A stretch of DNA of 64,000 nucleotides from Phallusia mammillata (GCA_965637545.1 OZ281494.1:2170001-2234000), one strand, 5' to 3'; counted from the stretch's first letter, positions 3,334 through 64,000 are shown. Numbers and translations are program-made. The notes: generated by a model not told the origin, from the sequence alone.

Positions 3334-6300
3334 ATGACAAGCATATACAGTACAATAACATTGTGGGTTTTCTTTCTGTTAGCGAACGTCATCCAAAGTA
3401 CGTAATCGCCTGCTAAAAGTAACAAGTAACTTAAAAGCTAAAAATTCAAACGATATATTAAAGCAAACTGTAAGAAGTTTTGACAAACTTTAATAAAATT
3501 AAATCATTTATTGTACTACAGTATATTCACAAACAACAGACGAGCCATGTATGAACGTCAACGATCGCCGAGAATGCTTCGGTGAGCTAAATCCAAATAT
3601 AATATAAATGAATTAATACTTTAATATTTTGTCCAATAGTGTGTAATGCTGATGGATACAAAAACAGTAGTTGTACAAACGGAGGTACAATGCGGAGAAT
3701 TCGTGTCGACTTTTGTGAAATAAAAAGTGACGTGAAGTAAGTAATTTTTGATAAACATTTTCTTGTGTAAATATAATTCTCGGCTGCTGAAACAGAAACC
3801 AGAAAAAATTTAATTGTTGCTTTTGAAAGCTGGTATAACTCACTAAATAATTCTATTTTTTCAAATAAAATTTTAAATGATGAAATTGTAAGCGTATGTA
3901 AAAGTTCCTAAATGATAAATCCTCAACGCCATATTTTTCTGCTCAATTATCTTTCAGTGCAAAAAAATCCGAACAAAATGAGGTTAACAACAGAAAGTGT
4001 CAATGACTGAAATTTCAATAAAGCCAAAATAAACGGTGTTAATGTTTATCAAATCCTAAATGATTGCATTCTGCAACGGCATTAATGTTGCATACTTGCA
4101 TGTCACTTGATATTTGAACATACCACACAGTTTGTAGGTCATATGGTTTCGTATATTTATTGTGTTTTTTGTAAAGCAACGAATACACATGCGACGTCAC
4201 ACCAAACTGCAACAAACAAAAGAAACATAAGCAAAGGGAGCGACTGATACGAAGAACTTGTCGCAAGAAAGCTGAATGTGAAATTCCATCTGGAGCGTGG
4301 AGAAATAAACATTACATGTTAATAACATTCAAATGCAAAGGATGTGGTGGTAAATACGTTTGAAATTCGAAGCTCATTTTTATTTAAATCTTCTTAAATT
4401 TTGTCCGTTTTTGTTTTCCATGTATCGAAAAACACTTTTACTTTGAAGATTTTTGACAAAATGGATTAAAATACTTAATAGTTAAAAATAACATACATTG
4501 ATTATATTATACCAGCGTATTTTTTATACTAACTTCGACCCAAATTAGCATCATAATTGTTATGTTTGGATACGCAGTGAAAGATATTATACTACTTTCA
4601 ATGCTCCATTCTTCACTTAGTAAATTTTGATATTATCTAGGTAAAAATGTTTTACAGAAAGCTGTGGAAACGAAGACATTGAATTTAAAGGGGAAACTAA
4701 TTCGTATCAAGCTCTGAACATGCTCACCGAAACATTCACGATCTACCAAGATGAAAAATCTGAGGCAAGAAAGTTTGACATAACAATACCCAACTCTGGT
4801 CCATACTTGTCGGTTGATGATGTTCATCTCAATAACATTTCCACCAGTTCATCTTTGCCATTTGTCGCTGCTTTGTCGGTCATCAACATCAATTCTTCTA
4901 GTAAAGAGCTTTTCAACAACCTGACAACCGAACTGACAACTACAAGAGTAGCTGATGTTCTCGCAATAGACGACCTGCCCTTAATCTCCATAGTCGTCGA
5001 TCAAGAAGATGATTCGGAAGAATCGGAAGAATCGGAAGAATCGGAAGAGTCGGAAGATTCGGAAGATTTATTTCAAACCGAAGTTACGTTTTCTTTGTCG
5101 GTTCCAGGCACCACAAACTTTAAAACAGAAATAGAGCCAAAGTTAATGAAGAAAGCTGGTGATAGAGATGTTTTTGTCAAATCAGTCAATTGGATTTGCG
5201 TTTTCATTGACCCTGAAACGTATGTGTTTTCAAGGAATGGCTGCGCACTGACCACTAGTGTGAATAGATCACAAGTTTCATGTGCTTGCAATCACACCAC
5301 CATATTTAGTGTGCTTCTTGCCGTGGACGCTGTCATTTTACCAGCTTACATTAAGGTAAATCAAATGCATGGGTATACTGACATGAACGTTAATGCAGCT
5401 ATATCATCAGTGTATAAACACGTACATATTACATCTTACTTCAAAAGCAATAATGTTACTAGTTAATCAAATTTAGTTTGTACCAGTATCTTAGGAACTT
5501 GGAGTCATTGCTTAAATTGTTGAGAAAAACATGAACTTTTTATCAGATCCTGTCTTACATCACTGAAGGCACAACGGTTTTGTTTCTCATCATTACTGTC
5601 ATCACAATCTTCAACGTCCGCCATGCGATCGTAAACGACCGAATCTTTGTTCAAATCAACTTGTCACTGGTTCTCATGATCTTCCACGCACTCAATTTAA
5701 TCCATGACGTCGCTATGACGTATCCGCAGCTGTGCGAGGCTCTGGCGGTTGCCATACACTACTTCCTGCTGTCTTCAGGTAATTTTCTGTTTCAATCACA
5801 CGCAACAGGGTTTACCTACAGTTTAATCAAAGGAATCAACGCATTTTACCACCAAGACATGGTTTGAATGAAATAGGCGCCACGGTTATTTTCGATGCTA
5901 TCTAATTCAGTGTCAATTTCTTCATTGTTAGTAATTTAACTTAGGTTATTTTCCAAAATTAAATTAAACTGTTCACCAAAATAAGAATCTAAAAGGTGCA
6001 AACTTTGTTTGACTCATGGTACTTGGTTTCTAAAATCACATAAACCGAATGGATGATAATTAAACTCTGTGTAACATTAGTTGATAATTTTAACTAAACT
6101 TACATTAAATATTGTTCAACAGTGTTCTGGATGTTGGTGGAGGGAATCACACTTGCCATGAAAACTTCGTCCAAGTCTCTTCAATTCAACGCGATCAACC
6201 CGACCAAGCTGAACGTCATCAGAGCTCTCGTCGGATGGGGAATCCCCTCAATCATTACAGCAGCAGCAGCAGTTGTTGGTTTCGTCTTCACAGAGAATTA

Positions 6301-7351
6301 CCTCACTCCAAGTGCGGTGTATGAAGCAGGTTTTAACACTTCCATGTACGACAATACCCTGCGTTGTTTCCTCGACCATCAATCCCATCTCTTCTACTGG
6401 TCGGTGATTGGTCCGATCTGTCTCTGCATTCTCATCAACCTTCTCATTCTCGGCCACGTGGTCGTCTTTATTTCCCGCCTAAACGCCAACCAACCGCGAC
6501 GAGGCCGCGTCCGTCGCCCAAACGCGCATGAGAAAATCACAAGGAAGGTCAAGATTCTTGTGGTGGGCGACATCGCAAAGAAGTTGCTGCTCCTCACTCC
6601 TGTCATGGGATTTCCACTGGTGCTGGGAATATTTGTAGGTAAGGATCTTTCTGTCACTGCTGCGCGCTACTGACGAGTTCCAGTCCCTATATGCTTAACA
6701 ATAAAACAGGATGAGACCATAGTGGGCACATCTAAGGATTCTTCCGAAAGATTAAGTGTATGCATAATCACCTAAAAACACACAAATTGGTGTACGGCCA
6801 CAGCGTGCACATCTCTTGTTACCCACAGTCGTCCTTCGTGTACTGAGAGTGTTCGTGTGTGTGCTCAAACACATGAAAAACTTTGCTGGACATAAACTGG
6901 TGTGTGGCCACAGCGCGCACATCTAATATTGCTCACAGTGGTCCTTAGGGCACTAAGGGAGCTTGCGTGTATGTCCAGATACATGAAAAACTTTGCTCAT
7001 AAACTGGTGTAAATAGCAGCGTGGTTATTTAATGTTACTCTGGTGGTTCGCAGTGTACTCAGTGCGCCTATGTGTGTGTCCAGATCCCACAAGTCAAGTT
7101 TTTATTGGTTGGCGGTCATTAACTTTTTGCCTCACCAGCAATTTGCCCCCAAATTCTCAAAAAATCGTTTCCATCCTTTTGTTGTTGCAGGAATAGGTTC
7201 AACTGAGAGCAACGATTTCTTCATGTACATCAATGTGATAGTGAACGGATTGCAAGGTTTATTTATCTTCATCATCTACTGTGTGATGCAAGAAGAAGTG
7301 AGAGAAGCCGTGAAGAGAGCTTGGTCGAGGTTTCAGTGCGGATATTGCTAG
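3334..7351 (+). CDS. Adhesion GPCR with N-terminal SUEL/Gal-lectin-like domain, GAIN/GPS and 7TM (666 aa, 8 exons)
   Basis: Exons 3334-3397, 3522-3581, 3640-3736, 4177-4349, 4658-5355, 5547-5778, 6123-6638, 7191-7351. All introns are GT-AG, phases match, total 2001 nt. Signal peptide MTSIYSTITLWVFFLLANVIQ. Lectin-like ...RTCRKKAECEIP...KHYMLITFKC. GPS CVFID...NGC...CACNHTTIFSVLL. Family-B/adhesion 7TM motifs FWMLVEG, GWGIP, IGPI and NGLQGLFIF. Confidence 0.9.
5014..5067 (+). repeat. Coding 9-bp tandem repeat (TCGGAAGAN x6) encoding SEE/SED in the adhesion GPCR GAIN region
   Basis: Six consecutive units tcggaagaa x3, tcggaagag, tcggaagat x2, read directly from the sequence. Confidence 0.95.
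6784..7090. repeat. Intronic minisatellite, about 108-bp unit x ~3
   Basis: Units start AAA(T/C)TGGTGT at 6784, 6894 and 7001. They share CCACAGCG.GCACATCT and ACATGAAAAACTTTGCT blocks. The repeat lies in intron 7 of the adhesion GPCR. Confidence 0.75.
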
Positions 7352-8475: not shown

Positions 8476-8663
8476 TCAGGTAGTAACCATTTCTGTACTG
8501 GTCCGCACCTCAGAAACAAATCGAATTTTTTTGCATTTATCCACTGCGCTGTCAATTACAGAAGAATAAAGCAAGGGATTGAGGGCGCTGTTGATTGGAA
8601 GCAAAACCGCAGCTGCAAGCACATAAACGATATCAGACAATACTACACCACCAAGCGACAAAA
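8476..8663 (-). pseudogene. 3' fragment (TM7 + C-tail) of the LDLa-GPCR family, inverted and 36 kb from the array
   Basis: Encodes LSLGGVVLSDIVYVLAAAVLLPINSALNPLLYSSVIDSAVDKCKK, identical over this stretch to the C-terminus of the 44068-47505 gene. Confidence 0.92.
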
Positions 8664-9694
8664 CAATTGCTTTAAAAATGTAAAGGGGCTGATGGGAGGT
8701 ACCGCGTAAAAAAAATCCGATTTGATGTAGAAGGTTTTTTGTAGTCTCTAAGAATAAAACCATACAGAGACTGCATGGACGATGAATGTAAAACATCCAG
8801 AAACTCGACATCTCCTTCATCTTTTGAAAAATTCCTAAACGTCAGGCGAAGCCCAAACTTCACTGCATTGTTTAGTGCAACCTCGATGCATCTGTTTACC
8901 GCTGGTCCAGTTGCGATCCATACGATGTCGTCTATAAATCGTTTGATGATCTCGCATTTTTTAAGTGTTTTTGCTATCGGTTTCAAGACAAAGTGCAAAG
9001 CTATGTTTGCTAAAGAGACAGAGTGATTATCTCCGGCAACAATACCTTCGGTTTGTTGATAATAATCCTCACCATACTTAGTTGTAACACTTTTTATAGT
9101 TACCATGACCAATTCCACCCAATGTTTTCTTCCCTCAGCATTAAACTTCGTGTGTTCTTGTAGCGCTGTACCAAGCGCTTTTTTTATTGAACCCCTGGGC
9201 AGATTTGGATACAGGGCAACTATATATGCAGCTGTAATGCAGAGGCGTCCCCTGAGCATTTGTGCTTTGTGGACGTTTTCTCGCTTCCACTTTTTTACCT
9301 CCTCCACATAGTGCATACTATCACGATAGAATTCGTCAATGCCCGACTGGCAGTATTTGATTGCCACAGGATGCAATATACGTTCAATAAGTGCCGTCAT
9401 ACGCGAAGTTGTGATGTGCCAGCAGCTTGAAAGAGTCTCACAGGAATGTCGCGTATGTTGATAACATTCAGTTCTTCCTCCATCAATTTATGGGTTTTAA
9501 AAAGTGGATAAGCGTATGCCGGGCTACTATTTTCAAAGTTTTTTGCCGTCGGTCCGGAAACTCGGTGGAACCTGTTTCCCGTCACCTTGGAGCGTAATAG
9601 TAGGTGTTCCGATATCACCGATGTGTGGTATAGTGCCTTGACGATTTTTTCACATTTCGGTCTGGTTAACTTACATTGTTTTTCAAATGTCTTT
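8664..9694 (-). mobile_element. Degenerate Penelope-like retroelement reverse transcriptase fragment
   Basis: Motifs AYPLFKTHK..IPVR, ALYPNLP, YYQQTEGIVAG..SVSLAN, RFIDD, FLDV, YKKP and SHQP..KAI. Frameshifts near 9400 and about 8730. The first catalytic-region Asp is replaced by Tyr (YIVALY). No GIY-YIG endonuclease remains. Confidence 0.85.
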
Positions 9695-9696
9695 TC

Positions 9697-9756
9697 GAAT
9701 TTTCTGGGCAAACCACCTACAGCGTTTCCACTGAGTGTCCGATTATTTCGCAATAA
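9697..9756 (+). pseudogene. Pentraxin class B terminal fragment (B0)
   Basis: Encodes EFSGQTTYSVSTECPIISQ*, matching the end of the intact minus-strand gene B4 (EFSGETTYIVSNECPIISQ*). The downstream UTR also matches. Confidence 0.85.
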
Positions 9757-9829
9757 ACCAAATGTTGGTGGTTTTGGTTTGCAAGCAATGCTAAAGAAAT
9801 ATATATGTGCACTCTTGCATCAAAATATT

Positions 9830-11080: not shown

Positions 11081-11084
11081 TTAT

Positions 11085-11715: not shown

Positions 11716-11896
11716 AATACTGCCGAAGTACCAACCACTTTCAGTACAAGGAAACGTGGTAAAGAAAAGTGATGTACATGCAAAATCTTGTTTTTCTACC
11801 CAGTTTTGTTTGTTTGCTATTGTTTTTTTGAAAATGTAAAAGTTCAGAATATAGGTTTATCATTGTTTTGTATTTGTCAAGACATACAAAGTCAAT

Positions 11897-12184
11897 ATGC
11901 ATCTAATTTATACTCTGTCTATTTTGCTTGCTCTTGTTTCTACCAGTGTTGGTGATGTTGAAGGAAGTTGTGCAAGTAAGATTTGTTATTGATTTACCAC
12001 AACATATGCGGTTGGTTTAATTGGCAAAACATCAGGTTTAAAAGCTTCATATTGATATGTGATAAATGCAAAGTTTTCCTATTTAACTTATTTTCAGGTG
12101 AAGTTTTCCAACTTCAACAAAATGTTACTCATTTAAACAAACAAGTTTCTTTGGCGTATTCCAAACCAACTGTACCAACAACAA
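11897..12184 (+). pseudogene. Pentraxin class A 5' fragment (A1; exons 1-2 only)
   Basis: Exons 11897-11975 (MHLIYTLSILLALVSTSVGDVEGSCA) and 12098-12184 (coiled-coil-like EVFQLQQNVTHLNKQVSLAYSKPTVPTT). Intron 2 runs into an adhesion-GPCR exon copy, and there is no pentraxin domain. Confidence 0.85.
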
Positions 12185-12270
12185 GTAAGTTGTACTAACA
12201 ACATAAGTTACCATAACGTAAAGGTGAAGTTACATTATGCTAAAGAATTGCTCAACGGAACTGCGTGTTA

Positions 12271-12673
12271 TTGCTTAAATAATTGAGACTTAAAAACAAA
12301 AACTTTTTAATCAGATCCTGCCTTACATCACTGAAAGCACAGCGGTTTCGTTTCTCCTCATTACTGTCATCACAATCTTCAACGTCCACCATGCGATCGT
12401 AAACGACCGAATCTTTGTTTAAATCAACTTGTCACTGGCTCTCATGAACTTCCACACACTCAATTTAGTCCATGACGTCGCTATGACGTATCCACAACTG
12501 TGCAAGGCTCTGGCGGTTGCCATACACTACTTCCTGCTGTCTTCAGGTAATATTCTGTCTCAATAACACGCAACAGGGTTTACCTATAGTTTAATCAAAG
12601 GACAATGAACACATTTTACCACCTAAACATGGTTTGAATAAAATAGGCCCGACGGTTATTTTCGATGCTATCT
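12271..12673 (+). pseudogene. Duplicated, disabled copy of adhesion GPCR exon 6 (TM1-TM3) with flanking intron
   Basis: Near-identical to 5508-5903. The exon copy is 12315-12546 and carries an in-frame stop (GTT TAA where the parent has GTT CAA). Confidence 0.92.
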
Positions 12674-13951
12674 TATTTTGCAGCCTTATTCTCGTGTCCA
12701 GCGTAAAATATGTGCAAGTAAACATATCAGTAATTGGATGAAACTTAGTAGTCAGAGTTTGGAAGAAACCAAGATTATATCACTTCCGTATTTTTACGAT
12801 TGTGCTACTGGGCGAAAAAACGAAACACGGAGCATTTTATTGGGTGAATGTTTCTGCTAAGGCGGACAAAACTGGATGATTTTTTAACTGTGCTAGTTTT
12901 AAAATTTTGCTTTTACAGTTTTACATGTTTCTACCGCCGCTTAGAAACGTTTGTACGCTGTTTGCCAATGACAAACCATTTGGAACCACAGTGACGTTCG
13001 CAGCGACTGTGGTAACAATGTGTGCAAATATATTAAAAACCTCAACAGCTTCTAATTCAGTCACTTTTCAACACTTCTGTTTATCCATGTGACATATGTA
13101 ATCTCTACCTTACGGTTGGGAGTTTAGGGTGAAGTCTATTTTTCTATCGTGCTAAATGCAGGCCGAAGGTCAGTTGTAGGTCAATTCAACAAGCTGTTGA
13201 GAATTATCTTGCGTAATGTAAAATCCAGATGCAAAACTAAATTCAAAGCAACAACATTATAGATCAATAATTGATAAATATCACAGAGTCCAAAAAACTA
13301 TAATTTCACTTTGTTTTCTGCGTGGCACAAACAAAAAATAATAAGATTCAAACAACACTAGGCAATATTTGAAACGTCGAAAAAATGTTAAAATGTTCGG
13401 AATGTAAAGATATAAGGGAAATCTAAAGCACATTCTTAAGACAATGTAAGCACAGCTATTTCAACAACGTTTCGAAATGAATGTTAGCTTTTTTCCCTAC
13501 TTTGGTACGTTTGCCTTTCAAGGTGGCTTTTTATTTGGCTTTCAAGTGCAGTCGGACGTCACTTGGCAAACATCATTTGTGTTCATTGTGTTAAGAACAA
13601 ACATAAATGATATCGCAATATTTCGTGTGTATAGACACAAAAAGGTACGTGACAGGTGTGTCAATAGAGATTCTTTTTTTCTGCCGTATTTTGTCGTTAC
13701 AACAACTAAGGTTGTCGGTTATAACTATCGTATTGCCAAAGTACTTACTTTACAACTTACAGTTACTTACAACTACTTACTAAACTTACTACTTACAGTG
13801 CAAGGAAACGTGGTAAAGGAACTGGTGTACATGCAAACCTTGTTTTCTACTTAGTTTTTATTTAGTTTTTGTTTGCTATTGTTTTATTAGAAGATGTAAA
13901 AGACTAAAATATAGTTGTATCATTGTTTTTTGTCCAGATATACAAGTCAAA

Positions 13952-15462
13952 ATGCATCTAATTTATACTCTGTCTATTTTGCTTGCTCCTGTGTCTCTCA
14001 TTGCTGGTGATGTTGAAGAAAGTTGTGCAAGTAAGAATTGTTTTTATTCACCACAACCTATGCGTTTGGTTTAATTGGCAAAGCAACAAATTTAATAGCT
14101 TCATATTGATATGTGATAGATGCAAAGTTTTCCTTATTTAACTGATTTGCAGGTGAAGTTTCGCAACTCCAACAAAAAGTTACTCATTTGAACAAACAAG
14201 TTTCATTGGCGTATTCCAAACCAACTGTACCAACAACAAGTATGTTGTATTAATAACATACCATAACGTAAAAGTGAAGTTACATTATGCCAGTGGTTCC
14301 CAACCTTTCGTGGACCATGGCCCCCTTAAAGTAACGTTTTGGCCTCGTGGCCCCCTTCAAGTTACCTTTTAGGACCTGTGGCCCCCTTAAAGTGTAGATA
14401 GCAATCTCGCGTTAGCATGTTGTATTAATTTTGACCTTAAACAGGTCTAATGGAGTAAATGAGAGTGATAAACCTCACTATAAACAAATAGTATGTGAAA
14501 TCGTCGATTAAATTCGGGAATAAAGTTAAAGTGAAAATGACTTTTAGTGGGTGTTTCTTGTGAATCTACGCCCGTGTTCTTCTTGTGAATCTACGCCCGT
14601 GTTCTTGCATACTAAGAGACCCCGAAAGCAACAGGCGTGCGCGATGTCTTGGCGTAGAGCTTCAACCCGATTGATGTTCGATGACTTCAACCCGGTTTAT
14701 TTTCTTTGTTCACGTCCCAAAAACATTTCATGCCATTGAATCGAAATCCCCCTCACCTGTACTGATCCTGATTTTTACCCTCTTTCACATTGATGTATAT
14801 GGGTACCAATCTGCCATTTGCGCGATTCTCCCGTACTTTTTACTGGCATTAAATACTTGCTGCCTGGTTTACACCTCATTGAGGAATGACATAAAATTTT
14901 CAAAACGTCATGTTTTTTTTACAAATAAAATGGCTTGTCTTGTTTTTGTTAATTTCTATAATGATGTTGGAAATGGAAAATGTCACATATTTTTAGAATC
15001 ATGTTTGCGTCTGGTTTGATTCCGAGCTAGAGACGATTGGAGCTTACATCAATGGTGAAGAATTACCTGCACGAGGTTATGGAGGTGAAATTGTCCATGG
15101 AGGAGGAAGTTTAATACTTGGACAGGAGCAGGATGCGGTTAACGCGGGAGGTTTAGATCCCGATCAAAGCTTCAGGCAAATTAAAAACTTACCATTTGTT
15201 TGAAACTTAAACTCTATTTTTTGGTAGGTCTCATCATTGAAACAATCAACATAATTTGTACTGCGTGTTTTCTTTATTCAGTGGAACAATCGACAACTTC
15301 ATGATCTGGCCTCGAGTTCTCTCCCAAGTCGAAGTGCTAAGGATCGGAGCGTTGGGTCAATGTCCAGTCGACCACGCTGTTGTCATGACAACCGATCGCG
15401 TCGAGATGTGGGGAAAGAGTCGCTACTCTGTTCCGATCGAGTGCCCTCTTTTGGTGGTTTAA
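13952..15462 (+). pseudogene. Pentraxin class A pseudogene (A2), exon 3 missing
   Basis: Exons 13952-14030, 14153-14239, 14997-15175 and 15282-15462. Motifs NHVCVWFDS, GGSLILGQEQD and GTIDNFMIWPRVL. The exon-3 region is replaced by a hAT remnant, so exon 2 (phase 1) to exon 4 (phase 0) is out of frame. Confidence 0.85.
14291..14980 (-). mobile_element. Truncated hAT (Buster/Charlie-like) element remnant
   Basis: TIR-like CAGTGGTTCCCAACC at 14291, exactly where the A2 intron diverges from A1. Subterminal GTGGCCCCCTT repeats follow. A decayed minus-strand segment loosely resembles the hAT C-terminal dimerisation motif (KKINRVEVIEH..STPR). The other end was not found. Confidence 0.55.
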
Positions 15463-47000: not shown

Positions 47001-47505
47001 GCTATCTTGGCATGACGCTAAACGAGTCATCGACATTAACATGTCAGGGCAATCCATCAAAGGAGAGTTTGGTTACTACGCCAAAACAAGCGTGTGTTTG
47101 CCGAGACTCTTTGCTTCAGAAAGCCATTCAGCTTGGGGATATTCACTGTTTATTATCACAGTCGATTTTGTCTTGTTTATTTTCATGGTAGCCGCTTATG
47201 TCCTTATTTATCGAAGGAGCAATCGCATGGCCAAGTCAAGAAACAATGATACCAGCTCCAAAATGCAAAAGCGAATATCCAGATTGCTTTTGACCGACTT
47301 CTGTTGCTGGATTCCGATTTGCATGCTTAGTTTTTTGTCGCTTGGTGGTGTAGTATTGTCGGACATCGTATATGTGCTTGCAGCTGCGGTGTTGCTTCCG
47401 ATCAACAGCGCCCTCAATCCCTTGCTTTATTCATCTGTGATTGACAGCGCAGTAGATAAATGTAAGAAATTACGTGTGGCTTCTGTGGGCCGAAATTCTG
47501 GTTAA
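44068..47505 (+). CDS. Multi-LDLa rhodopsin-family GPCR, GRL101/RXFP-like 7TM, no LRRs (G1, 999 aa, 2 exons)
   Basis: Exon 1 44068-44143 is the signal peptide MVRFVLLLTLIMLINNLQS. Exon 2 is 44582-47505; total 3000 nt. There are eight LDLa acidic D/N-x-[S/T]-D-E motifs plus degenerate modules. LGR-type 7TM: IWIMGILALIGNF, NLSVSDMLMGIYL, TDFCCWIPIC and LPINSALNPLLY. Confidence 0.93.
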
Positions 47506-49369: not shown

Positions 49370-49520
49370 ATAACAAAACAGTCTTCAATGAAAGCCAATA
49401 CAAATGCGGTTGTTTTTCAAGAAACAGTAATTTCACGTATGGGCTGGGATGTTATGAAAAGGCTGCCTAGATGGAACAGACGGAGTGCGTTGTACTTGCC
49501 CAGTAAATGAGTTTCAAGGT
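49370..49520 (+). pseudogene. Decayed LDLa-GPCR exon-2 5' remnant
   Basis: Matches G1 about 44740-44890 (CCAATACAAATGCGG, GGGCTGGGATGTTATGAAAAG, GATGGAACAGACG) with deletions. Confidence 0.75.
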
Positions 49521-50335: not shown

Positions 50336-50580
50336 TCGAAGACTTCGTCGGGTATCGGGTGTACTTTCCAAGTCTTACCAGCGCCACCTTGTGTATATAT
50401 TTTAAAATAACGGATCTAGAAATTAGCTACCAATGTTAACGTCCGATTTTACACCGAAAGTGCTATAACTCGAGCTTTGACAATGGTGAAGAAATATCTG
50501 CACAAGGTTATTCTGGATATATTGTCTCTGGAGGAGGAAGTTAATACTAAAACAGGATCAGGACGCTAGAAATCTGGATC
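50336..50580 (+). pseudogene. Decayed class A pentraxin remnant inside the GPCR array
   Basis: Exon-3-like EDFVGYRVYFPSLTSATLC followed by exon-4-like NGEEISAQGYSGYIVSGGG..QDQD, with indels. Confidence 0.8.
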
Positions 50581-52023
50581 CAAAACACGGACATCAGTGG
50601 TATTCATGTTTAAGTCATACACTTCAGTACACAGAAGGTTAAGTATTTTTGCTGTGACTTCGTGCGAACCGCCTCACGTAACATATAAGTCAGTTTCCTT
50701 GTGAACGTGGTCAATCAACGCAAATAAACTCTTGATGCGGGGACAGGATACTTTGTACTGACTTCCTCGCAATTTCAGGGGATATTTTATGACAAAAAGT
50801 TTAACTTCTCGTGATCACGGAACGATAGAAGCGGACTAGTTACCAATATGCTGCAGTTATACCTTACACTGCACGTTTTCCATCCTCCGATTGCTTGGCA
50901 GCTGCAGTGAAGCTTCTTTTTCTTGGTGTATTTTTTTATTTTACTGGGCGTTAAAGAGTTAAGTTAAAGCAACAAATGAAACTAGTAGCAGGCGAGTTGC
51001 ATTAACAGTGAGTGCGGCACTTGAGTAGATGCGCCTCGCTAATGAAAACTTTTTGTTTTGATACGTCACAAGAGCTGTCAATCAATTCAAATGTGACGCA
51101 AGTATAGAAAGTTTTTGTGTTGTGATCAATGGGAGTAGAGAAAAGCATCAAGCAACAGCAACAAATGCAAAAAGTGCAAACACTAACGACTTAAGTTAAG
51201 GTAATTTGTTGTCGTCGCATTTTAGGAAGCAGTACAGCGATTACCGTAATTTACAGTAGAAACACATTTCCAGGATGGCTGTCCTGACACGTCCTTAATT
51301 GCTCACTGGTATTTAGCTGACAGTGTCGGTTATGTTGTTGTGAGCTAGAAATTGCTGCTTAAAATGAGTGGTTCAATAAGGAGCCTCTTTGTTCACAAAA
51401 ATATAATTATAACAAGGGTGTGAAGTCGTTAATACATCGAAATACATAGTTACTTGGACTAATATGTAAGAATGTTTAAAATTGGCAACTGTGAGTTTAT
51501 TTGTTATCGTTAAAATGAGTTATTTTGGCATTTGTTGGGCAAACATAAAATAGTACCTTAGTTTAAAGAGAAATAAGCAAAAGTCTGTATTCAATCTGTA
51601 AACGCTTCACCCCCAGAAGGATAGTTGAAATTCAGACATTATTTCGTATGCCATTCCTAATATAGATGTAGTGCTTGCAAACGTCATCATAATTCTATAA
51701 GTGTCATTGCGCTAAGTAGGTTGCAAAAATGCAGTTGTTTGATCGCTATTGTGAGTTTCCCTCCAATGAGTTATAGTTGTCAACCTCGCACATATATTGC
51801 CACACACGTCAAATTGACAAATGCTCGCTTAGTCTGGTATTCATTTTGTCGAGCCTCAGTATCATTAGGTTGCCATATGGATTCAAACCATATAGAACTA
51901 GGAAAAAACAAGTATAAAATATTTTTGGTAACGGATTTACCCAGATTTGCACATACATTGTCCTATTTAGAAAAGCGTTTTTGTATGTATACTAAATCTA
52001 TGTAACCATTTAGAAGAGTAAAA

Positions 52024-54621
52024 ATGGTTAGGTTTGTGCTGATGTTATCTGTAATAGTGTCAATCCACAATCTACAGTCAGAGGGACTCGAATTTGAGTG
52101 CAAGTCAAAACAGAACGAATTTGAGTGCAAGTCAAAACAATGCATCCCTTTATCTTCAAAGTGCAATGGGAAGTTCGACTGCGATGACACCAGCGACGAA
52201 ACCAACTGCACATGTAGTGGTGATAAAGTAATGTGCGGATGCATCTATGCCGATCAGATCTGTCCGACTACTGGGCAATGCATACCTAACACAACAGTGG
52301 CCGATGGTAAGCCGAACTGCATTGATCAAAGCGATGAACCATGTCAGACGTTGAGCCAACAATACAGCATATACTGCCAACATCGTTTATTTAACTGCAC
52401 CAGTAAAAAATCGATGGAGAGATTTCTGAAGTATCAAGGACACAATTCTGCGAACTGTGTTCAGCATCACAGCCCGTGTAAAGGGCACAAGGATAAAATG
52501 TGCACAGATGATTACTGGATTTGCAACATTCCAAAATGCCAAACACAGAATAAATCACCATCGAAACAGAATACACCGCCGGTTTACTATCAAGATCTTT
52601 ACAACAACATGAAGTTTGCTTTGTTTTCTTTTTGTCCTTTTATAACACCAGCTGATTACCACATCAACACATACCCGAGTTTCAAATGTCTTGGATACTG
52701 GTTAACATTTCCATGTAGCTTGCCTCAGATTAATCTCTATCGACCAAGACGCCCAGTGCGCTGACAAATCCGATCTGTGTTTCGTCAACCGAGAATTTCG
52801 ATGCTTCCTTTGCCTGGACAAGAGACTGGTTATCTCAAAGAATCAGGTGTGCGATGGTGTGATTGATTGCTACGACCTGTCAGATGAATGCTTGTGCGAG
52901 AATCAGACGGTGTGCAAAGCCGTGCTTGGCGATTCTCAGTCAACTTGTCCACCAGGTCATATGCACTGCTACAACCAAACAGATTGCCTTCCAATAGATT
53001 CTGTCATGTGCAACCAATCTGTGAACTGCTTGCACGCGCATAACATTAACTATTGCTACCCGCAAATTAACTTGACCTTATGCAGCAGAAGCCCTATATA
53101 TGGTGTAGCATGCGATGGAAGACCTGAATGTTCCGATGTCAGTGATGAGTGTTCTAACTGCCCAAATCCACCAGCGTTTTGCTATGACAGCCAATTTATG
53201 TCAGATGCCACAAGTATTGGATGTGTGATGGAATAAAGCGTGGCAGTTCCTACAACGAATCACTTTGTCCCAAACGCTATATTTGTAACAGTGGCACTTT
53301 TACAAGCATTGACGTCAGGAAAGTTTGCGATGGAAACTACGACTGTGACGATAAATCGGATGAGGCAAAGGATCGTTGTAAGAACAAGAGATTTTATTGT
53401 CTAAGTGGTAATCCACTCTCAGTGCCCATTGCAGAAAAGGAAGACGGAATCAAAGACTGCTCGGACGGCAGTGACGAATGTCCACCAGTGAGCTCACGTA
53501 ACACTGTTTTCTCCAATCAGAAGGAAATGATCGCCAACCCGATTTTGAATGCGTTGATATGGATAATGGGTATCGTTGCATTGATTGGGAATTTCATAGT
53601 TGCTGCAACCACTGTTAAAAAGACATATCTAAACTGGAATACCAACAATCGTGTAAATACATGCACTCAAATATTCATTGTTAACCTATCAGTTTCCGAC
53701 ATGTTAATGGGAATCTATTTACTTGCTGTTGCAGTCAAAAGTGCTCAGTATTCAGGAAGGTATTGTTATTTTGATTCTGAATGGCGATCGAGCACACAAT
53801 GCTCGATCCTAGGCGCACTATGTGTCATTTCATCGCAGACTTCAGCTTTAACCATGGCACTGATATCTGCTTATAGACTTGTGTCTGTCTACAAACCATT
53901 TCTCACTATATCACTAGGGCCTAAGTGGATTGTTTTGGGGTGTTTCGTTACTTGGTGTGTTTCTTTGTTCATTGCCATCATTCCCACAATTGATTTTGCA
54001 TCCGGTTACTTTGTAACAACAATCTGGTTTCCCAATTTCGTTTACAAACGCGATTTTTTTTCTTTTGGGGCTGCAATGCTTTTGGCACAACGCATGTCAC
54101 CTACCAACAGCACCGTGTTATCATGGCACGACGCTAAACGAGTCATCGACATTAACATGTCTGGTCAATTAGTCAAAGAAGAGTTTGGTTACTACGCCAA
54201 AACAAGCGTGTGTTTGCCAAGACTATTTGCTTCGGAAAGTCATACAGCCTGGGGATACTCACTGTTTATAATCACAGTCGATTTTGTCTTTTTTATTTTC
54301 ATGGTAATCGCTTATGTCCTCATTTATCGACGCAGCAATCACATGGCTGAGGCAAGAAACAATGATATCTGCGCCAAAATGCAGAAGCGAATATTAAGAT
54401 TGCTTCTGACCGATTTCTGTTGCTGGATTCCGATTTGCATACTTGGTTATCTGTCGCTGGGTGGCGTACCGTTGTCTGATATCGTTTATGTGCTTGCAGC
54501 TGCGGTTTTGCTTCCGATCAACAGCGCCCTCAACCCGTTGCTTTATTCAACTGTGATTGACAACGCACTAGACAAATGTAAGAAATGTCGCGTGGCATCT
54601 GCTGAACTCATTATTATGTGA
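52024..54621 (+). pseudogene. LDLa-GPCR copy G2: intronless through an internal deletion, with two frameshifts
   Basis: The signal peptide is fused in frame to the third LDLa module. A +1 base near 52740 and a -1 base near 53210 are seen relative to G1, and the shifted frame stops at 52764. The 7TM region 53221-54621 is open. Confidence 0.88.
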
Positions 54622-56519: not shown

Positions 56520-56670
56520 AACAAAACAGTCTTCAATGAAAGCCAATACCTTTGCGGTTGTTTTTCAAACGACAGTAATTGCACGTATGGTCTGGAATGT
56601 TATTAAAAGACTGCTTAAAAGGAACAGACGAAGTGCGTTGTATTTGCCCAGTAAATAAATTTCAAGATAA
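56520..56670 (+). pseudogene. Second copy of the decayed LDLa remnant
   Basis: Near-identical to 49370-49520 in the same flanking context. Confidence 0.72.
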
Positions 56671-58056: not shown

Positions 58057-61000
58057 ATGGTTAGGTTTGTGGTTCTGTCATCTCTTATAATGTTAATCAA
58101 CAGTCTACTGACAGACGGGCTCTTCACTTATGGTAAGCAAACCGTTTCTTTAAATTAGTAGTCCTAAGTCTTTGTCAGTGCCTTTGTAGAAACTTAGTTT
58201 GGGCTTTAATAGGTGTGAAAGCATTAAGTAAAACTTGTCATTGGTTAAATTCCTATTTAATGCTCAAAACTCAATATTGTTTTATTTAAAGACTAAAGCT
58301 AATTAATTACTGCTATATAATAACTAATTTATCATTAGTGTCACAGCGAAATTTAGGATACATTGCAAAAAAAAACGATAATGAATTATGAAAAAGTTTA
58401 AGCCTGTTCAAAGCACCTCAAAATGCTGATGTAAACAAAAACATCTTAACTGTTTTAATGCGTAACATTGCGTTTTACGTTCATTCATTCTCTGGAAGTG
58501 TAATTTTTGATCACGCTTATTGTAGTAATCGATATTTTTTACAGAACAATGTCGGTTTAAGCAGCAAAGTTGCAACGTTGGACAGTTCGTGTGTGGATGC
58601 CCAGCATCAAGGCCGGATAACAATTTAATAACATTTAGGGCTTCTCAATGTCTCCCTATCGAATTATGTACTATATACAACAAAACGGTCTGCACTGAGA
58701 CCCAATACCAATGCAGTTGTTTTCCAAGAGACAGTAAATGCACATATGGGTTGGGATGTTATGAAAAGACACAAATATGTGATGGCATCTACGACTGCAT
58801 AGATGGAACAGACGAAGAAAATTGTACTTGCCTATTTTATGAGTTTCAATGTGCATGTTATGAAAGTTCCTCATGTGTTGGTTTGCGTGGCTGTCTATCA
58901 ATTTTCAAGTTGTGTGATAGGATTAATGATTGTAAAGAAAACAGCGATGAAAACATCTGCCCTTGCTGGGAAGATCAATTTGAGTGCAATTCTAAACAGT
59001 GCATCCCTTTATCTTGGAAATGCAACGGAAAATCTGACTGCGATGACAGCAGCGACGAAACCAATTCCACATGTAGTGGTGATCAAGTAATGTGCGGATG
59101 CATCTATGAAAAACATATCTGTCCGACTACTGGGAAATGCATACCTGACACATCTGTGGCCGATGGTAAGGCGGACTGCATTGACCATAGCGATGAACCT
59201 TGTGACTATTTTTCTAAAACTTTACGGCTATTGTGTTATTACCATCTCATAAACTGCACCAACAAAAAATCCATGAGATTTTTGAAGTACCAAGCAAATA
59301 ATTCTGCAAATTGTATTCAGCATCACAGACCGTGTAAAGGGCACAAGGAAAAAATGTGTCCGGATGAATACTGGATTTGCAACAAGCCTCAATGCGAAGG
59401 AGAGAATACAACCCCATCGACACCTCCGGTTTACTATCAGGATCACAATAACAACATCAAATTTGCTTTGTTCGCTTTTTGTCCTTTTATAACTCCAGCT
59501 GATTACCACATACACGTATACCCGAGTTTCAAATGTCTTGGATATTGGTTAACATTTCCATGCAGCTTGCCTCAGATCAATCTTTACGACCATTCTCGAC
59601 AGTGCGCTGACAAATCCGATCTGTGTTTCGTCAACGGAGAATTCCGATGCTTCCTTTGCTTGGACAAGAGACTGGTTATCTCAAGGAAGCAGGTGTGCGA
59701 TGGCGTGATTGATTGCTACGACCTGTCAGATGAATGCTTGTGCGAGAATCAGACGGTGTGCAAAGCCGTCCTTGGCGATTCTCAATCAACTTGTCCACCA
59801 GGTCATATGCACTGCTACAACCAAACAGATTGCCTTCCAATAGATTTTGTGTTGTGCAATGGCTTTGTAAAATGCATGAACGCGAGTAACACCCAATATT
59901 GCTATCAACAAATTGACTTGATTTTATGCACCGAAAGGAATGCATATGGTGTAGCGTGCGATGGAAGACCTGAATGTCTAAATTCCACTGATGAGTGTCG
60001 TAACTGCCCAAATCCACAAGCGTTTTGCAACGACATCCAATTTATGGCAAATGCCATAGAACTTTGGGTGTGCGATGGAATACAGCCTGGATCCCATAAC
60101 GAATCACTTTGTCCCAAACGCTATATATGCAGCAGTGGCACTTTTATCAGCATTGACGTCAAGAAACTTTGCGATGGAAACTACGACTGTGACGATAAAT
60201 CGGATCAGTCAATGGTCTGTTGTAAGGACAAGCGGTTTTATTGTCTTGATGGGAATCCATTATCAGTCCCCATTTCTGACAAGGAAGACGGAATCAACGA
60301 CTGCTCGGACGGCAGTGACGAATGCCCACCTGTCAGCTCTCGTAACACTGTTTTCTCCAATCAGAAACAAATGATTGCCAACCCTATTTTGAACGCGTTT
60401 GTATGGATAATGGGTATCATTGCATTGATCGGGAATTTCATTGTAGCTGCAACCACTGGTAAAAAGACATATCTAAAGTGGAATACTGACAATTGTGTAA
60501 ACAAATGCACTTAAATATTCATTGTTAACCTGTCAGTTTCCGACATGTTAATGGGAATCTATTTACTTGCTGTTGCAGCTAACCTTGCCCAGTTTTCAGG
60601 AAGTTATTGTTACTTTGATTCTGAATGGCGTTCAAGCACACAATGCCCGATCCTAGGTGCACTGTGTGTCATTTTATCTCAATCTTCGGCTTTAACCATG
60701 ACATTGATATCTGCTTATAGACTTGTATCTGTCTACAAACTATTTCTCACTATATTACTGGGACCTAAATGGACTATTTTGGGGTGTTTTGTTACTTGGT
60801 GTGTTTCTTTGTTCATTGCCATTATTCCAACCCTTAATTTTTCCTCTGGTTAGTTTGTGACGACAATCTGGTTTCCTAATTTCGTTCACAAACGTGATTT
60901 TGTTTCTTTTGAAGCTGCAATGGTTTTGGCACAACGTATATCACCCAGCAACAGCACCGTGTTATCATGGCACGAGGCTAAACGAGTTACAGACATTAAC

Positions 61001-61465
61001 ATGTCAGGCCAATCAATCAAAGGAGAGTTTGGTTACTACGCCAAAACAAGCGTGTGTTTGCCAAGACTTTTTGCTTCAAGTGGCCATGCTGCTTGGGGAT
61101 ATTCACTGTTTATCATCACAGTCGATTTTGTCTTGTTTATTTTCATGGTAATCGCCTATGTTCTCATTTATCGACGCAGCAATCGCATGGCGGAGGCAAA
61201 GAGCAATGATACGAGCGCCAAAATGCAAAAGCGAATATCCAGATTGCTTCTAACCGATTTCTGTTGCTGGATTCTGATTTGCATCCTCAGTTCTTTATCG
61301 CTTAGTGGTGTAGTAATGTCAGACATCGTATATGTGCTTGCAGCTGCGGTTTTGCTTCCTATCAACAGCGCCCGCAACCCGTTGCTTTATTCAACTGTGA
61401 TTGACAACGCACTAGACAAATGTAAGAAATGTCGCGTGGCTTCTGCTGAATTCGTTATTATGTGA
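58057..61465 (+). pseudogene. LDLa-GPCR copy G3, full-length with two nonsense codons
   Basis: Exons 58057-58132 and 58545-61465 stay in one frame. TAA at 60512-60514 (CAA in G1) and TAG at 60851-60853 (TAC in G1). TM7 reads NSARNP instead of NSALNP. Confidence 0.9.
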
Positions 61466-63539
61466 CTCATCGTGAATTTCTTTAACAGTATCCTACTGGT
61501 GTCTAAAAAACACCGATATATTGAATATACCCTTTCTATTTTGCACTTAATCAACCTGTGTTCTATTTGTGTAAACGTTTTCCTTTTGCTTTAACGTGAT
61601 GCGCTTGTACCTGATGTTTGTGCTACGGTTTTGTACAGGTTTGATTTGTTCAAAATCAATACATATCTTGGATCATCAAAAAAAAGTTTACCAAAACTAT
61701 TTGATCCCAGATTGTTGAATACTAATAAAACGTGATTGTTTTCCATCAGTCAGACTCAACGCTTTTCAACGATCTGTTCGCGGTTCATGGGTCAAACGCC
61801 TGCCTCGCGGGTTCATGGGTCAAAACAAATTAGAAAAATGCGCCGCAACAATCTGTTGCCTGCTTAGTGGGGTTTTAAAATGTTAAGGAACATTCTAAAC
61901 TTGCCTTAAAATGTAATAAAAAATCTAAGATCTTAAGCAAACAATATGTGATTTTAAAAGATAACATTTTGTGACTGACAAGTTATTTTGGTGCAACGTT
62001 AAATGTTTGTATCACAAAAAAGAGTTTCAAGATTGTAACAAACTAGTGTCCCAAGATTTGTTACACCCTCAAAACCCCGCTGGGCCGGCAAAAATCGTTG
62101 CATCACGTTGCGCTTAATTGTGCTGGCGACAAGAAAACATGACCTGTTGTTGGCTCTCAAATTGGAACATAAACTAGATTTTGGCAGGTCCACTAGCAAA
62201 ATAGAAACATGGTAATAGTGTTAGTGTTGCAGCTGCATAATACATTTAATAGGAAGCCATTGACTTCAACAAACCACCTTAACCGCAACTGAGTAAACCC
62301 GCTTTCCCTCGCCGGTAGTTATTAATCATTACTGATCAGCTGTTGATGTTGAGACAGGATGTACGTGCAATAGCTGCTTTCTCTCATGTATCAAGCTAAG
62401 GTATAAATAGTTAAAATTCTTTGGGCATACATGACTTTGATGCTGTTTAAAACACTTAGCAAGCAGCGTCACTAAAAAGTGTGCTGTCACTTACCTTCCT
62501 ACTAATTCCCGGCGGCGGGCAAGTCCATATGCTAGTTTTTTTGCGCAGAAATTTATGTGATCTATGATACAATAAACGCATTTGATCTGGATTCAGGTCA
62601 CATTATTCATACTTTAATTTTGTGCCGTCGCTTCTAAACCTTGCAAAATTGAAAAATAACTTTGCAAATTACTTTTGTTGACGTTTTCACACAACACAAG
62701 CGTTTGCTGCCTTACCTCGGCATCTTTGCCACGAACATCAAGAACAATATTTTGTCTGGTACTCAGTTGTGCAGGAATGTAAAAAACAAACAAAAGAGTT
62801 CTTTGTGACACAACGTATCTGCCAACTGTTCAATAACAGAAAATAAAACCGTATTGGAAGGGTGAACTATTTTGATTACTTGTCGCTTGGTTGCTCTACT
62901 TTGGACTCTTATTAACAGCTTTCTTCTAATCGAGGCAGTTATTTGTGGAAACGCGATAAGAAGGCAGGATATTTGTGATGTCTCTTCCCAACTTTCTACC
63001 CGTATTTAGTGGGAAATTGCCGAATCTGTCATTCAGAGGTAAAACCGTGGTTGCTGTGATGTATAAAGAAAAATTCTGACCAAAAGCTTTAAACCTGTCT
63101 GCTAAACTAACAGTAGAGGAATATAATTGTGATTGTAAATGCGGTATTCAATCAGGAAAAGCCCATCTTCAAGACTAATATACTTTTTACGTGATCTAGA
63201 CAAAACTAGTGTTTTCTGAAAGAGCACACAAGACAGTTGGAAGTATAAGTAACTTGCGAACATACAGGAGCACTGATAAACCCGAGAAAAGATTAAACGC
63301 AAATTACGGGATTTTATCAGAGTTTTTCGACAAAAATCATTTCGTTGGCAATAATTGATCAATTAAACAACTTTACCTGCTATGTGTTGCAAATTGGTTA
63401 GAGTATTCTCCACAAGCTTGATTGATTTGACGGCAATAACATTTGGTCAGCGACTTCCTCCCGCTCGTGCCAAGCATTAGATGGTTTAGTATATTGTTGT
63501 GGCTCACAATCGGGACAGTTTGTAAAGTTTGTAAAGCGA

Positions 63540-64000
63540 CTTCGGCTTTAACCATGACATTGATATCTGCTTATAGACTTGTATCTGTCTACAAACTATT
63601 TCTCACTATATTACTGGGGCCTAAATGGACTATTTTGGGGTGTTTTGTTACTTGGTGTGTTTCTTTGTTCATTGCCATTATTCCAATCCTTAATTTTTCC
63701 TCTGGTTAGTTTGTGACAACAATCTGGTTTCCTAATTTCGTTCACAAACGTGATTTTGTTTCTTTTGAAGCTGCAATGCTTTTGGCACAACAAATGTCAC
63801 CCACCAACAGCACCGTGTTATCATGACACGACGCTAAACGAGTCATCGACATCAACATGTCCGTGCAATTAATCAAAGGAGAGTTTGGTTACTACGCCAA
63901 AACCAGCGTGTGTTTGCCAAGACTGTTTTCTTCAAGTGGCAATTCAGCTTGGGGATACTCACTGTTTGTAATCACAGTAGATTTTGTCTTGTTTATTTTA
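63540..64000 (+). pseudogene. 5'-truncated LDLa-GPCR 7TM fragment G4 (runs off the window)
   Basis: Homology begins abruptly at TTCGGCTTTAACCATG (TM3). It shares G3's TAG (63707-63709) and G3-specific residues (YKLFLTILLGPKWTIL), and has an extra TGA near 63824. Confidence 0.88.

Follow-up and report, generated by a model that had tools for sequence, protein, structure and literature searches.

Why should genes for secreted pentraxins lie interleaved with genes for LDLa-bearing receptors in an ascidian chromosome? The question is raised by a stretch of 64,000 nucleotides, referred to here as the window (C1:2,170,001-2,234,000), from the 240-Mb genome of Phallusia mammillata, for which the initial annotation proposed three linked and rapidly turning-over families of extracellular recognition proteins, the pentraxins and receptors possibly forming an opsonin/receptor system. 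As the left arm of a ~175-kb region rich in duplications (C1:2.137-2.313 Mb), the window contains one adhesion GPCR (GPS plus 7tm_2), pentraxins in eight three-exon units and three remnants, and four copies of an LDLa-rhodopsin GPCR (one intact), with fragments besides. All three families are real, as are their extracellular character and the cluster's pattern of birth and death, and two known gene families have expanded side by side in this region.

The adhesion GPCR was delineated as follows:

3334-7348, plus strand: adhesion GPCR gene (Pfam GPS and 7tm_2, ORF reading)
~3334-3402, plus strand: signal-peptide exon
4645-5463, plus strand: GAIN/GPS exon (Pfam GPS, E 3e-8)
5535-5864, 6098-6670 and 7013-7348, plus strand: 7TM exons (7tm_2, E 4e-16 for 6098-6670, and 5e-3)

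The GPS lies directly 5' of a secretin-like 7TM by Pfam, the arrangement that defines an adhesion GPCR, and its cleavage motif is C-N-H-T-T in place of the usual H-L-[ST]. The gene had been called lectin-bearing, and this part of the description was not sustained: the candidate N-terminal exons (3503-3604, 3612-3737 and 4175-4360) gave no Pfam match at E<=1, a PDB search yielded nothing meaningful, and none of the 84 matches in a genome-wide SUEL_Lectin search fell inside the window. Past the right-hand pentraxin, the minus strand contains another adhesion-GPCR copy, which is partial.

Pentraxin units were located using HMMs made from paralogous exons, and the resulting eight units and three remnants agree with the earlier count of about a dozen genes and fragments. 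Units U1-U8 span 14.9-41.1 kb, and two old types (1 and 2) alternate along the array:

9697-9753, plus strand: exon-C remnant, type 1-like (exon-C HMM, E 2.5e-6)
11734-12240, plus strand: orphan type-2 5' exons (signal peptide plus next exon; signal-peptide ORF)
13788-15456, plus strand: U1, type 2, truncated, without exon A (5' exons, exon B 14997-15179, exon C 15274-15456)
18649-19294, plus strand: U2, type 1, without exon C (exon A 18649-18939, exon B 19112-19294)
20222-22373, plus strand: U3, type 2 (exon A 20783-21055, exon B interrupted, exon C 22191-22373)
24948-25928, plus strand: U4, type 1 (exon A to 25451, exon B 25505-25687, exon C 25746-25928)
28362-29119, plus strand: U5, type 2, with open domain exons A, B and C
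31738-32667, plus strand: U6, type 1, with open domain exons A, B and C
34068-34128, minus strand: decayed exon-C remnant with stops and frameshifts (exon-C HMM, E 3e-4)
35918-37232, minus strand: U7, inverted, type 1, with open domain exons A, B and C
40323-41140, plus strand: U8, type 2, with its own stop codon (upstream of G1, forming the pentraxin part of that cassette)

U4 looks complete, its Met and signal peptide sharing an exon with exon A and its introns being GT-AG, and the 5' exons of U5 were traced in part only (27937-28047). Exon B of U3 is interrupted by a ~330-bp MITE (21621-21949) with terminal inverted repeats of 16-21 nt and an 8-bp target duplication, TTATAAAG. The orphan 5' exons share 84-85% identity with 13788-14290 and 20223-20677.

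The array pentraxins are secreted, three-exon, CRP/SAP-like proteins. A six-frame genome search with Pfam Pentaxin (PF00354; cut-off 25) scored U5 at 43.6 bits, obtained by reading across an intron, and U3 at 40.2 bits, while lone exons score under the cut-off. Searches of the PDB with exon profiles matched CRP 5-97 for exon A (E 3e-5), CRP/SAP 91-154 for exon B (E 5e-8) and, weakly, NPTX2 146-174 for exon C (E 0.5). These matches are colinear and are all to pentraxins (CRP, SAP, PTX3 and neuronal), bar two trivial exon-B matches at E 0.3-0.9. Like CRP and SAP, the array proteins have exons colinear with the fold, and a signal peptide. The exon-A profile also finds pentraxins of Clavelina, Ciona and Styela, which, among short pentraxins and annotated tunicate CRP-like, SAP-like or neuronal pentraxin-like genes, are the closest named relatives of the array.

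An exon A cysteine (A4 column C37) is invariant and aligned with a CRP cysteine, and the H-x-C cysteine of exon B is present in seven of the eight array copies; we take the two to match the CRP disulfide pair. The PROSITE pentraxin pattern is H-x-C-x-[ST]-W-x-[ST]. Array copies do not follow it and read H-[IV]-C-x-W-[FI]-D-S; when aligned by HMMER with SAP HICVSWES, their Trp comes one residue earlier, which is a variant of the motif and no loss. In the calcium loop (DNE-type), an Asn aligned with CRP Asn61 is invariant and the residue aligned with Asp60 varies; further on, GQDQD of type 2 is aligned with GQEQD of SAP/CRP, the type-1 sequence being GQDED or GQDID. The array differs from CRP and SAP in its variant signature, in some calcium ligands that vary among copies, and in comprising two deeply diverged types in alternation. 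Calcium-dependent recognition in body fluids is the probable role of its members.

The LDLa receptors comprise the following copies and pieces:

44068-47505, plus strand: G1, intact rhodopsin-class GPCR with LDLa repeats (a 988-codon exon preceded by a small signal-peptide exon)
49386-49520, plus strand: GPCR 5' coding fragment in the G1-G2 spacer (72% identity with 44733-44892)
52024-54621, plus strand: G2, GPCR pseudogene by Pfam (two frameshifts, first ~150 residues absent)
56534-56665: GPCR fragment
58057-61465, plus strand: G3, GPCR copy (in-frame stops at 60512-60514 and 60851-60853)
63440-64000 and past the window edge, plus strand: G4, 5'-truncated GPCR copy, starting at G1 residue ~709

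A further piece lies on the minus strand at 8497-8663. The single 988-codon frame of G1 contains Ldl_recept_a in four stretches (E 1e-26) and 7tm_1 (E 2e-17) by Pfam, and no leucine-rich repeat family was detected in G1, G2 or G3 (E<=0.01). The tblastn frames of G2 (1/2/1) run contiguously in G1 coordinates. Database matches of G1 are LDLa plus 7tm_1 proteins of Ciona, Clavelina and Styela (E 1e-100 to 1e-200, 30-45% identity), and the window receptors are members of the LDLRR-GPCR family of tunicates, in which many LDLa repeats are set on a rhodopsin-class core. This family was described in Ciona (Kamesh et al. 2008, PMC2396169), where the 7TM core is of the relaxin/INSL3-receptor type, ESTs come chiefly from blood/haemocytes, and large protein complexes were proposed as ligands (PMC2396169). 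The Ciona receptors have the same architecture, with LDLa repeats directly on the rhodopsin-class 7TM and without leucine-rich repeats, and are likewise in tandem (three within 13 kb at one locus, L036); G1 shares 35-41% identity with the Ciona, Clavelina and Styela LDLRR-GPCRs over ~90% of its length, and up to 45% in the 7TM alone. The family is much bigger in P. mammillata, with 532 first-look candidates, of which 103 were scored (all 103 at E<1e-116), compared to 14 confirmed members in Ciona. The LDLa receptors of the window are orphans and, by analogy with Ciona, are probably expressed in blood cells.

The reported interleaving of the families at 8.5, 12.3 and 50.3 kb was upheld by sequence identity. 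The pieces concerned, with the spacer discussed below, are:

8497-8663, minus strand: LDLa-GPCR TM7/C-terminus remnant (89% identity, DNA and protein, with G1 residues 933-987)
8675-9487, minus strand: reverse-transcriptase fragment of a retroelement (Pfam RVT_1, E 4e-5, under the curated cut-off)
12257-12677, plus strand: adhesion-GPCR TM1-2 exon copy with flank (90% identity over 421 nt with 5494-5907)
41141-44067, plus strand: cassette spacer, U8 to G1 (colinear 70-76% homology)
50338-50541, plus strand: decayed type-2 pentraxin, parts of exons A and B (HMM E 1e-10 and 2e-7)

The TM7 piece (8508-8663 against G1 47333-47488, 89% identity) is abutted by the retroelement fragment, and the adhesion-GPCR exon copy directly follows the copied pentraxin 5' exons at 11734-12240. 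The decayed pentraxin, with a stop and deletions, is 86% identical to U8 exon A and occupies the cassette position upstream of G2. Mobile-element insertion, the retroelement and small segmental copies together gave rise to such "interleaved" fragments.

The spacer between U8 and G1 has two homologues: the spacer of a pair at C3:8.64 Mb, and 50590-52080, situated immediately between the 50.3-kb pentraxin remnant and G2. The same order (pentraxin, then GPCR) and the same relative strand recur on the minus strand at C1:2.304 to 2.296 Mb, C3:8.645 to 8.635 Mb, C1:5.4954 to 5.4896 Mb and C1:5.6742 to 5.6690 Mb, and those C1-cluster pentraxins that adjoin a GPCR and could be placed in the tree all fall in the type-2 clade (support 99/99). 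Because the spacers are homologous and order and strand are shared, all adjacencies except one convergent pair on C3 trace to one ancestral pentraxin-GPCR cassette. The exception, at C3:18.67 Mb, is not homologous to the cassette in its non-coding sequence and has a pentraxin outside both window clades; it is a copy of great age or else arose independently.

The two genes are adjacent because they were copied as a unit, an ancestral block of type-2 pentraxin, ~3.5-kb spacer and LDLa-GPCR in which both genes have one orientation. The cassette was duplicated in tandem with a period of ~7 kb, the whole adhesion-GPCR/pentraxin/GPCR block was mirrored as an inverted copy 60-140 kb downstream, and further copies reached C1:5.49 Mb, C1:5.67 Mb and C3:8.64 Mb. 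In the copies the pentraxin has usually decayed and the receptor survived. The two are separate genes, U8 having its own stop codon and G1, G2 and G3 each their own Met and signal peptide. Joint retention of both partners was not found at the G2 and G3 units, C1:5.49 Mb, C1:5.67 Mb or C3:8.64 Mb: the pentraxin is decayed or absent at the first four, and at C3:8.64 Mb the broken half is the receptor. A pentraxin or remnant nevertheless lies within ~6 kb of four of the five dispersed G1-subfamily copies, which could also reflect selection for linkage.

Beyond this subfamily the association was not encountered. A pentraxin gene accompanies the G1 subfamily (~18 copies), a pairing not seen at the sampled Ciona loci, and none of the >85 scored LDLa-GPCRs outside it is paired with a pentraxin. 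Around nine further pentraxin sites of the P. mammillata genome, 20 kb of flanking sequence per site, taken from 1-2.5 kb beyond the match outwards, contained no LDLa-GPCR. Conserved synteny in other ascidians, raised in the initial annotation, was likewise not observed: in a partial sampling of species, with best matches only 35-45% identical, none of 11 loci (six GPCR and five pentraxin, from Ciona, Clavelina, Styela and one metagenome contig) showed the two within 10 kb, and the pentraxin HMMs worked at these loci as a positive control. Among database proteins, none of 107 relatives of G1 contains a pentraxin domain, and none of 17 long pentraxin-bearing proteins contains LDLa plus 7tm_1.

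As a whole, we consider this account probable: cassette copying explains the linkage, the families work separately and their proximity is functionally uninformative. As a product of copying, linkage is no evidence that the pentraxin and receptor proteins pair; with all adjacencies but one descending from one copied cassette, it lends the opsonin/receptor idea nothing, and each family would work alone, the linkage presumably carrying no functional information. An immune setting for the cluster is plausible, because pentraxins are humoral pattern-recognition proteins and the ESTs of the Ciona receptor family are mostly from haemocytes. Thus the earlier immune-recognition reading holds for the families, their extracellular nature, their birth and death and the plausible setting, and its opsonin/receptor proposal draws no support from linkage.

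Rather than copying alone, clustering may have been favoured for co-regulation, the region being a shared regulatory neighbourhood, a "defence island" of blood cells or pharynx whose genes are switched together with no mutual binding; we find this unlikely. It would fit the presence of three extracellular recognition-type families within ~175 kb, the haemocyte ESTs of the Ciona receptor family (PMC2396169) and the classing of pentraxins among tunicate humoral immune factors (PMC5465252). However, the families are unclustered at the sampled Ciona, Clavelina and Styela loci, and tandem duplication by itself yields such islands.

It is rather improbable that the cassette pentraxin and LDLa-GPCR are a working ligand-receptor or co-receptor pair, a two-component sensor in which the secreted pentraxin, once it has captured its target, would be bound by the LDLa repeats and trigger signalling of the receptor in blood cells, joint copying of both genes diversifying the recognition system. 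LDLa repeats are calcium-dependent binders of basic residues. Ciona has a comparable case in the s-Themis/v-Themis self-sterility loci, linked pairs that are highly polymorphic and co-segregate; there, too, genes for a secreted or extracellular recognition protein and a multi-pass receptor are adjacent, whereas the cassettes usually lose one partner after duplication. The recurrent order and strand, the four of five dispersed copies with a pentraxin or remnant, the partly conserved calcium-site motifs (the Asn61-aligned Asn, and GQDQD for GQEQD), the haemocyte ESTs from the compartment where pentraxins are expected to act and the proposal of large protein complexes as ligands (PMC2396169) are all consistent with pairing. 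However, shared descent, evident in the homologous spacers, explains the recurrence; most cassettes keep the receptor open with the pentraxin decayed or absent (G2, G3 and C1:5.49 Mb), the receptor is the broken half at C3:8.64 Mb, and the counts given above for other LDLa-GPCRs, other ascidians and database proteins argue against it. If true, pairing would be the first pointer to a ligand of the tunicate LDLRR-GPCRs, of which this genome has hundreds, and a second ascidian case of co-inherited ligand-receptor genes.

That the mirrored and repeated layout is an assembly artefact, for example of haplotypes collapsed or set side by side, is very improbable: C1:2.137-2.313 Mb is strongly repetitive, and two small unplaced contigs (C49 and C174) have pentraxin exon-C matches with scores identical to that at C1:1.842 Mb, but the copies are 12-30% different in DNA with dS of 0.4-0.5, far above allelic divergence, their lesions differ from copy to copy, and the window contains zero N.

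The GPCR copies have a dN/dS of 0.27 (dS 0.41-0.48), about equal in the ectodomain (0.28) and 7TM (0.25), and the pentraxin copies mostly 0.2-0.5. Surviving copies are old (dS 0.4 to >2, saturated) and under purifying selection, at odds with rapid diversification; of the "rapidly turning-over" description, the frequency of broken copies stands, while the survivors are old and constrained. Compared to the birth-and-death arrays of vertebrate chemosensory and immune receptors, the window differs in the age of its copies and in a GPCR ectodomain without an excess of amino-acid change, and resembles them in its tandem units, many pseudogenes and fragments, and inverted segmental copies.

Ascidians are the closest invertebrate relatives of vertebrates, and a cluster in which pentraxins stand beside LDLa-repeat receptors reads, at face value, as an immune locus with 'opsonin plus receptor' already in place. 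This is how the initial annotation had read the region, as a candidate linked recognition complex; what it had observed is largely correct, apart from a lectin domain and the label 'rapid'. Both families are known; only a two-gene cassette and how far the receptors have expanded are new.

The window (C1:2,170,001-2,234,000; 37% G+C, 0 N) contains tunicate-type genes with short GT-AG introns. An all-against-all comparison of its open frames revealed three exon families repeating every ~3.4 kb, and HMMs built from these paralogous families were used to map eight pentraxin units (U1–U8, with domain exons A, B and C) and three remnants. Pentraxin searches, trees and dN/dS counts were all carried out exon by exon.

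Pentraxin units and remnants in the window
15.0-15.5 kb, U1, without exon A
18.6-19.3 kb, U2, type 1, without exon C
20.8-22.4 kb, U3, MITE inside exon B
24.9-25.9 kb, U4, type 1, the only pentraxin unit that could be followed over its whole length, Met with signal peptide through stop
28.4-29.1 kb, U5, open domain exons
31.7-32.7 kb, U6, type 1, open domain exons
35.9-37.2 kb, U7, inverted, type 1, open domain exons
40.3-41.1 kb, U8, open domain exons and its own stop
9.7, 34.1 and 50.3 kb, remnants found with the exon HMMs

In U4 to U8 the domain exons are open and the splice sites canonical. Exon B of U3 is interrupted at 21621-21949 by a ~330-bp MITE, whose terminal inverted repeats start CAGGGGTTCCCAACCT and whose target duplication of 8 bp is TTATAAAG. 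The A-B intron of U7 holds a repeat-like element of another kind, likewise ending in inverted repeats. Along 15-41 kb the two old pentraxin types alternate (2, 1, 2, 1, 2, 1, 1 inverted, 2) with a pair period of ~7 kb; the array therefore grew through duplication of a type-2/type-1 pair.

Single pentraxin exons score under the Pfam cut-off. When the genome was read across the short introns, Pfam Pentaxin was matched with 43.6 and 40.2 bits (cut-off 25). Compared with solved structures, the paralogous-exon profiles match CRP, SAP, PTX3 and neuronal pentraxins in colinear order, and the two non-pentraxin matches are trivial (E 0.3-0.9). When the first pentraxin exon (185 residues) was used in a word-based protein search, no match came up; an exhaustive profile search took its place, in which the exon-A profile retrieved 117 proteins among 1.84 billion. 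The best named matches are tunicate "CRP-like/SAP-like/neuronal pentraxin-like" proteins, and Pfam Pentaxin is present in all 17 of the long matches tested. The window copies keep the DNE-loop Asn and the cysteines aligned with the CRP disulfide pair; the loop corresponding to GQ[DE]QD reads GQDQD in type 2 and GQDED or GQDID in type 1. They show the classical pentraxin signature with a one-residue shift. The nearest public relatives of the window proteins come from Clavelina, Ciona and Styela at an identity of merely 35-45%, and a near relative is thus absent among named public proteins. Within the 240-Mb assembly (312 contigs), exon-C matches on two small contigs (C49:22596-22769 and C174:2982-3155) have a score identical to that of C1:1842163-1842336, on the contig of the window, and the small contigs probably represent unplaced haplotypes or duplicates.

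The receptors belong to the LDLa-repeat rhodopsin-class GPCRs, defined as the LDLRR-GPCR family in a 2008 Ciona GPCR survey and counting 14 confirmed members in Ciona (PMC2396169).

LDLa-GPCR copies in the window
G1, small signal-peptide exon followed by an open exon of 988 codons that encodes LDLa repeats and 7tm_1
G2, two frameshifts, first ~150 residues missing
G3, two in-frame stops
G4, 5'-truncated, continuing past the window edge

In G2 (52024-52200) signal peptide and LDLa region are continuous, where G1 and G3 have an intron, and the same stretch carries a short internal duplication (ECKSKQNEF-ECKSKQ). A first look across the genome with the 7TM region of G1 gave 532 candidates, and 103 of the 103 scored lie at E<1e-116; the scored loci are mostly open frames of 1,000-1,450 residues, concentrated on contigs C3 and C5. 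These matches suggest at least a hundred LDLa-GPCR loci in the genome, perhaps about five hundred.

Among the GPCR copies dS is 0.41-0.48 and dN/dS 0.27 (0.28 in the ectodomain, 0.25 in the 7TM part). Pentraxin dS is 0.44-0.63 within type 2, 0.6-1.8 within type 1 and saturated between types, with dN/dS mostly 0.2-0.5. The old dS and the dN/dS of 0.2-0.5 contradict the description of the families as rapidly turning over: both consist of old, constrained genes with a high copy death rate, and not of fast diversification.

The association of the two families centres on a cassette of type-2 pentraxin, spacer and LDLa-GPCR on one strand, as in U8 and G1. A single U8-G1 fusion gene was considered and rejected: U8 is stop-terminated, and G1 has its own Met and signal-peptide exon. 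G1, G2 and G3 each have their own Met and signal peptide, so the genes of the cassette are separate. The 3.4-kb U8-G1 spacer is colinear with, and 70-76% identical to, both the pentraxin-GPCR spacer at C3:8.64 Mb, on another chromosome-scale contig, and positions 50590-52080, downstream of the 50.3-kb pentraxin remnant and upstream of G2. Whole-genome searches found about 18 copies of the G1 subfamily (≥80% identity in the 7TM part).

G1-subfamily copies
C1:2.137-2.154 Mb, minus strand, three copies
window, plus strand, four copies
C1:2.245-2.299 Mb, minus strand, eight copies
C1:3.51, 5.49 and 5.67 Mb and C3:18.67 and 8.64 Mb, single copies

At C1:2.304, C3:8.645, C1:5.4954 and C1:5.6742 Mb the GPCR is preceded, at a distance of a few kb and on the same strand, by a whole or partial pentraxin; the neighbourhoods at C1:1.842, 6.60, 10.54-10.58, 3.51, 5.49 and 5.67 Mb were judged from coordinates only. 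Upstream of the window, a type-2 pentraxin (C1:2157701-2158930; exons A and B seen, exon A near-identical to that of U3) stands head-to-head with a minus-strand GPCR, and at C3:18.67 Mb the arrangement is tail-to-tail. Past the right-hand pentraxin, C1:2.311-2.313 Mb holds a second, partial adhesion GPCR in minus orientation, which gives a mirror image of the series adhesion GPCR - pentraxin - GPCR. In the exon-A tree every placeable GPCR-adjacent pentraxin of the C1 cluster groups with type 2 (clade support 99/99); U2, U4, U6 and U7 make up a separate type-1 clade, and the C3:18.67 copy lies outside both. Apart from the convergent pair at C3:18.67 Mb, the adjacencies are copies of one ancestral adjacency and not independent events, and linkage copied many times in this way does not count as repeated evidence for function.

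The reported physical interleaving of the families was borne out by sequence matches for all three pieces. The TM7 remnant (8508-8663) shares 89% identity with G1, and a minus-strand reverse-transcriptase fragment (8675-9487) directly adjoins it. Positions 12257-12677 are a 90% copy of adhesion-GPCR exon 5494-5907, directly 3' of a pentraxin 5'-exon copy, and 50338-50541 is a decayed type-2 pentraxin. The best explanation, which we hold to be the probable one, is a duplication-prone region in which the cassette and, separately, an array of pentraxins would have expanded, while mobile elements and small segmental copies would have given the interleaved fragments; linkage would then carry nothing on function.

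A functional tie between the partners would be in keeping with Ciona LDLRR-GPCR EST matches, which are mostly from blood and haemocytes, with the speculation that large protein complexes are ligands of these receptors (PMC2396169), and with the place of pentraxins among candidate humoral factors in a review of tunicate immunity (PMC5465252). Putative co-regulation without binding is an unlikely form of such a tie. In the G2 and G3 units, and also at C1:5.49 and C1:5.67 Mb, the pentraxin has decayed or is absent; the receptors of the last two loci still have frames of 985 and 661 residues. At C3:8.64 Mb the broken half is the receptor. No LDLa-GPCR was found beside nine other pentraxin sites of the same genome (10 kb of flank per side, beginning 1-2.5 kb outside the exon-C match), and no pentraxin matches near scored GPCRs outside the G1 subfamily. 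The synteny check in other ascidians proposed by the initial annotation spoke against conserved linkage: at none of the six LDLa-GPCR and five pentraxin loci sampled in Ciona, Clavelina, Styela and one metagenome contig does a member of the other family occur within 10 kb. These negatives are meaningful, as the pentraxin HMMs pick up foreign pentraxin exons with E-values of 1e-13 to 1e-24. One Ciona chromosome carries both families, with 1.9 Mb between them. A candidate true pentraxin-receptor pair is quite improbable; no pentraxin + LDLa + 7tm_1 fusion was present in 17 long pentraxin-bearing public matches or 107 G1 relatives. To our knowledge the LDLRR-GPCR family is an orphan, with no ligand since 2008, and it would be de-orphanised if the cassette partners bind. 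Of lasting use are the precise map of two growing families and a defined two-gene cassette that is open to direct cloning and testing.

The adhesion GPCR at the left of the window does exist, with its GPS and 7tm_2 exons matched in Pfam.

Adhesion GPCR exons
start 3334, plausible signal peptide
4645-5463, GPS exon (Pfam GPS, E 3e-8)
5535-5864 and 6098-6670 (E 4e-16), 7TM exons (Pfam 7tm_2)
7013-7348, final 7TM exon

The cleavage motif in the GPS exon (5330-5370) reads C-A-C-N-H-T-T-I-F in place of the usual H-L-[ST], and autoproteolysis may therefore be impaired. In Ciona an HRM + 7tm_2 GPCR gene lies 6 kb downstream of a SAP-like pentraxin (AP043568.1:4.36-4.39 Mb). Microsynteny with this arrangement was rejected: tblastn gave no similarity of the Ciona gene to the window's adhesion GPCR, and the proximity thus looks coincidental.

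The lectin assigned to this receptor found no support in Pfam, in the PDB or in a genome-wide SUEL_Lectin search. Three short Cys-rich candidate exons had 0 Pfam matches at E≤1 and nothing of significance in the PDB, and none of the 84 genome-wide SUEL_Lectin matches falls inside the window. By eye, the Cys pattern of exon 4175-4360 loosely resembles the SUEL C-terminal half, and this was not counted as lectin support. Elsewhere in the genome, SUEL-type (rhamnose-binding) lectin domains form dense tandem arrays at C4:5.77-5.81 Mb and C3:28.09-28.13 Mb, with dozens of matches above the Pfam cut-off at a spacing of ~1 kb.
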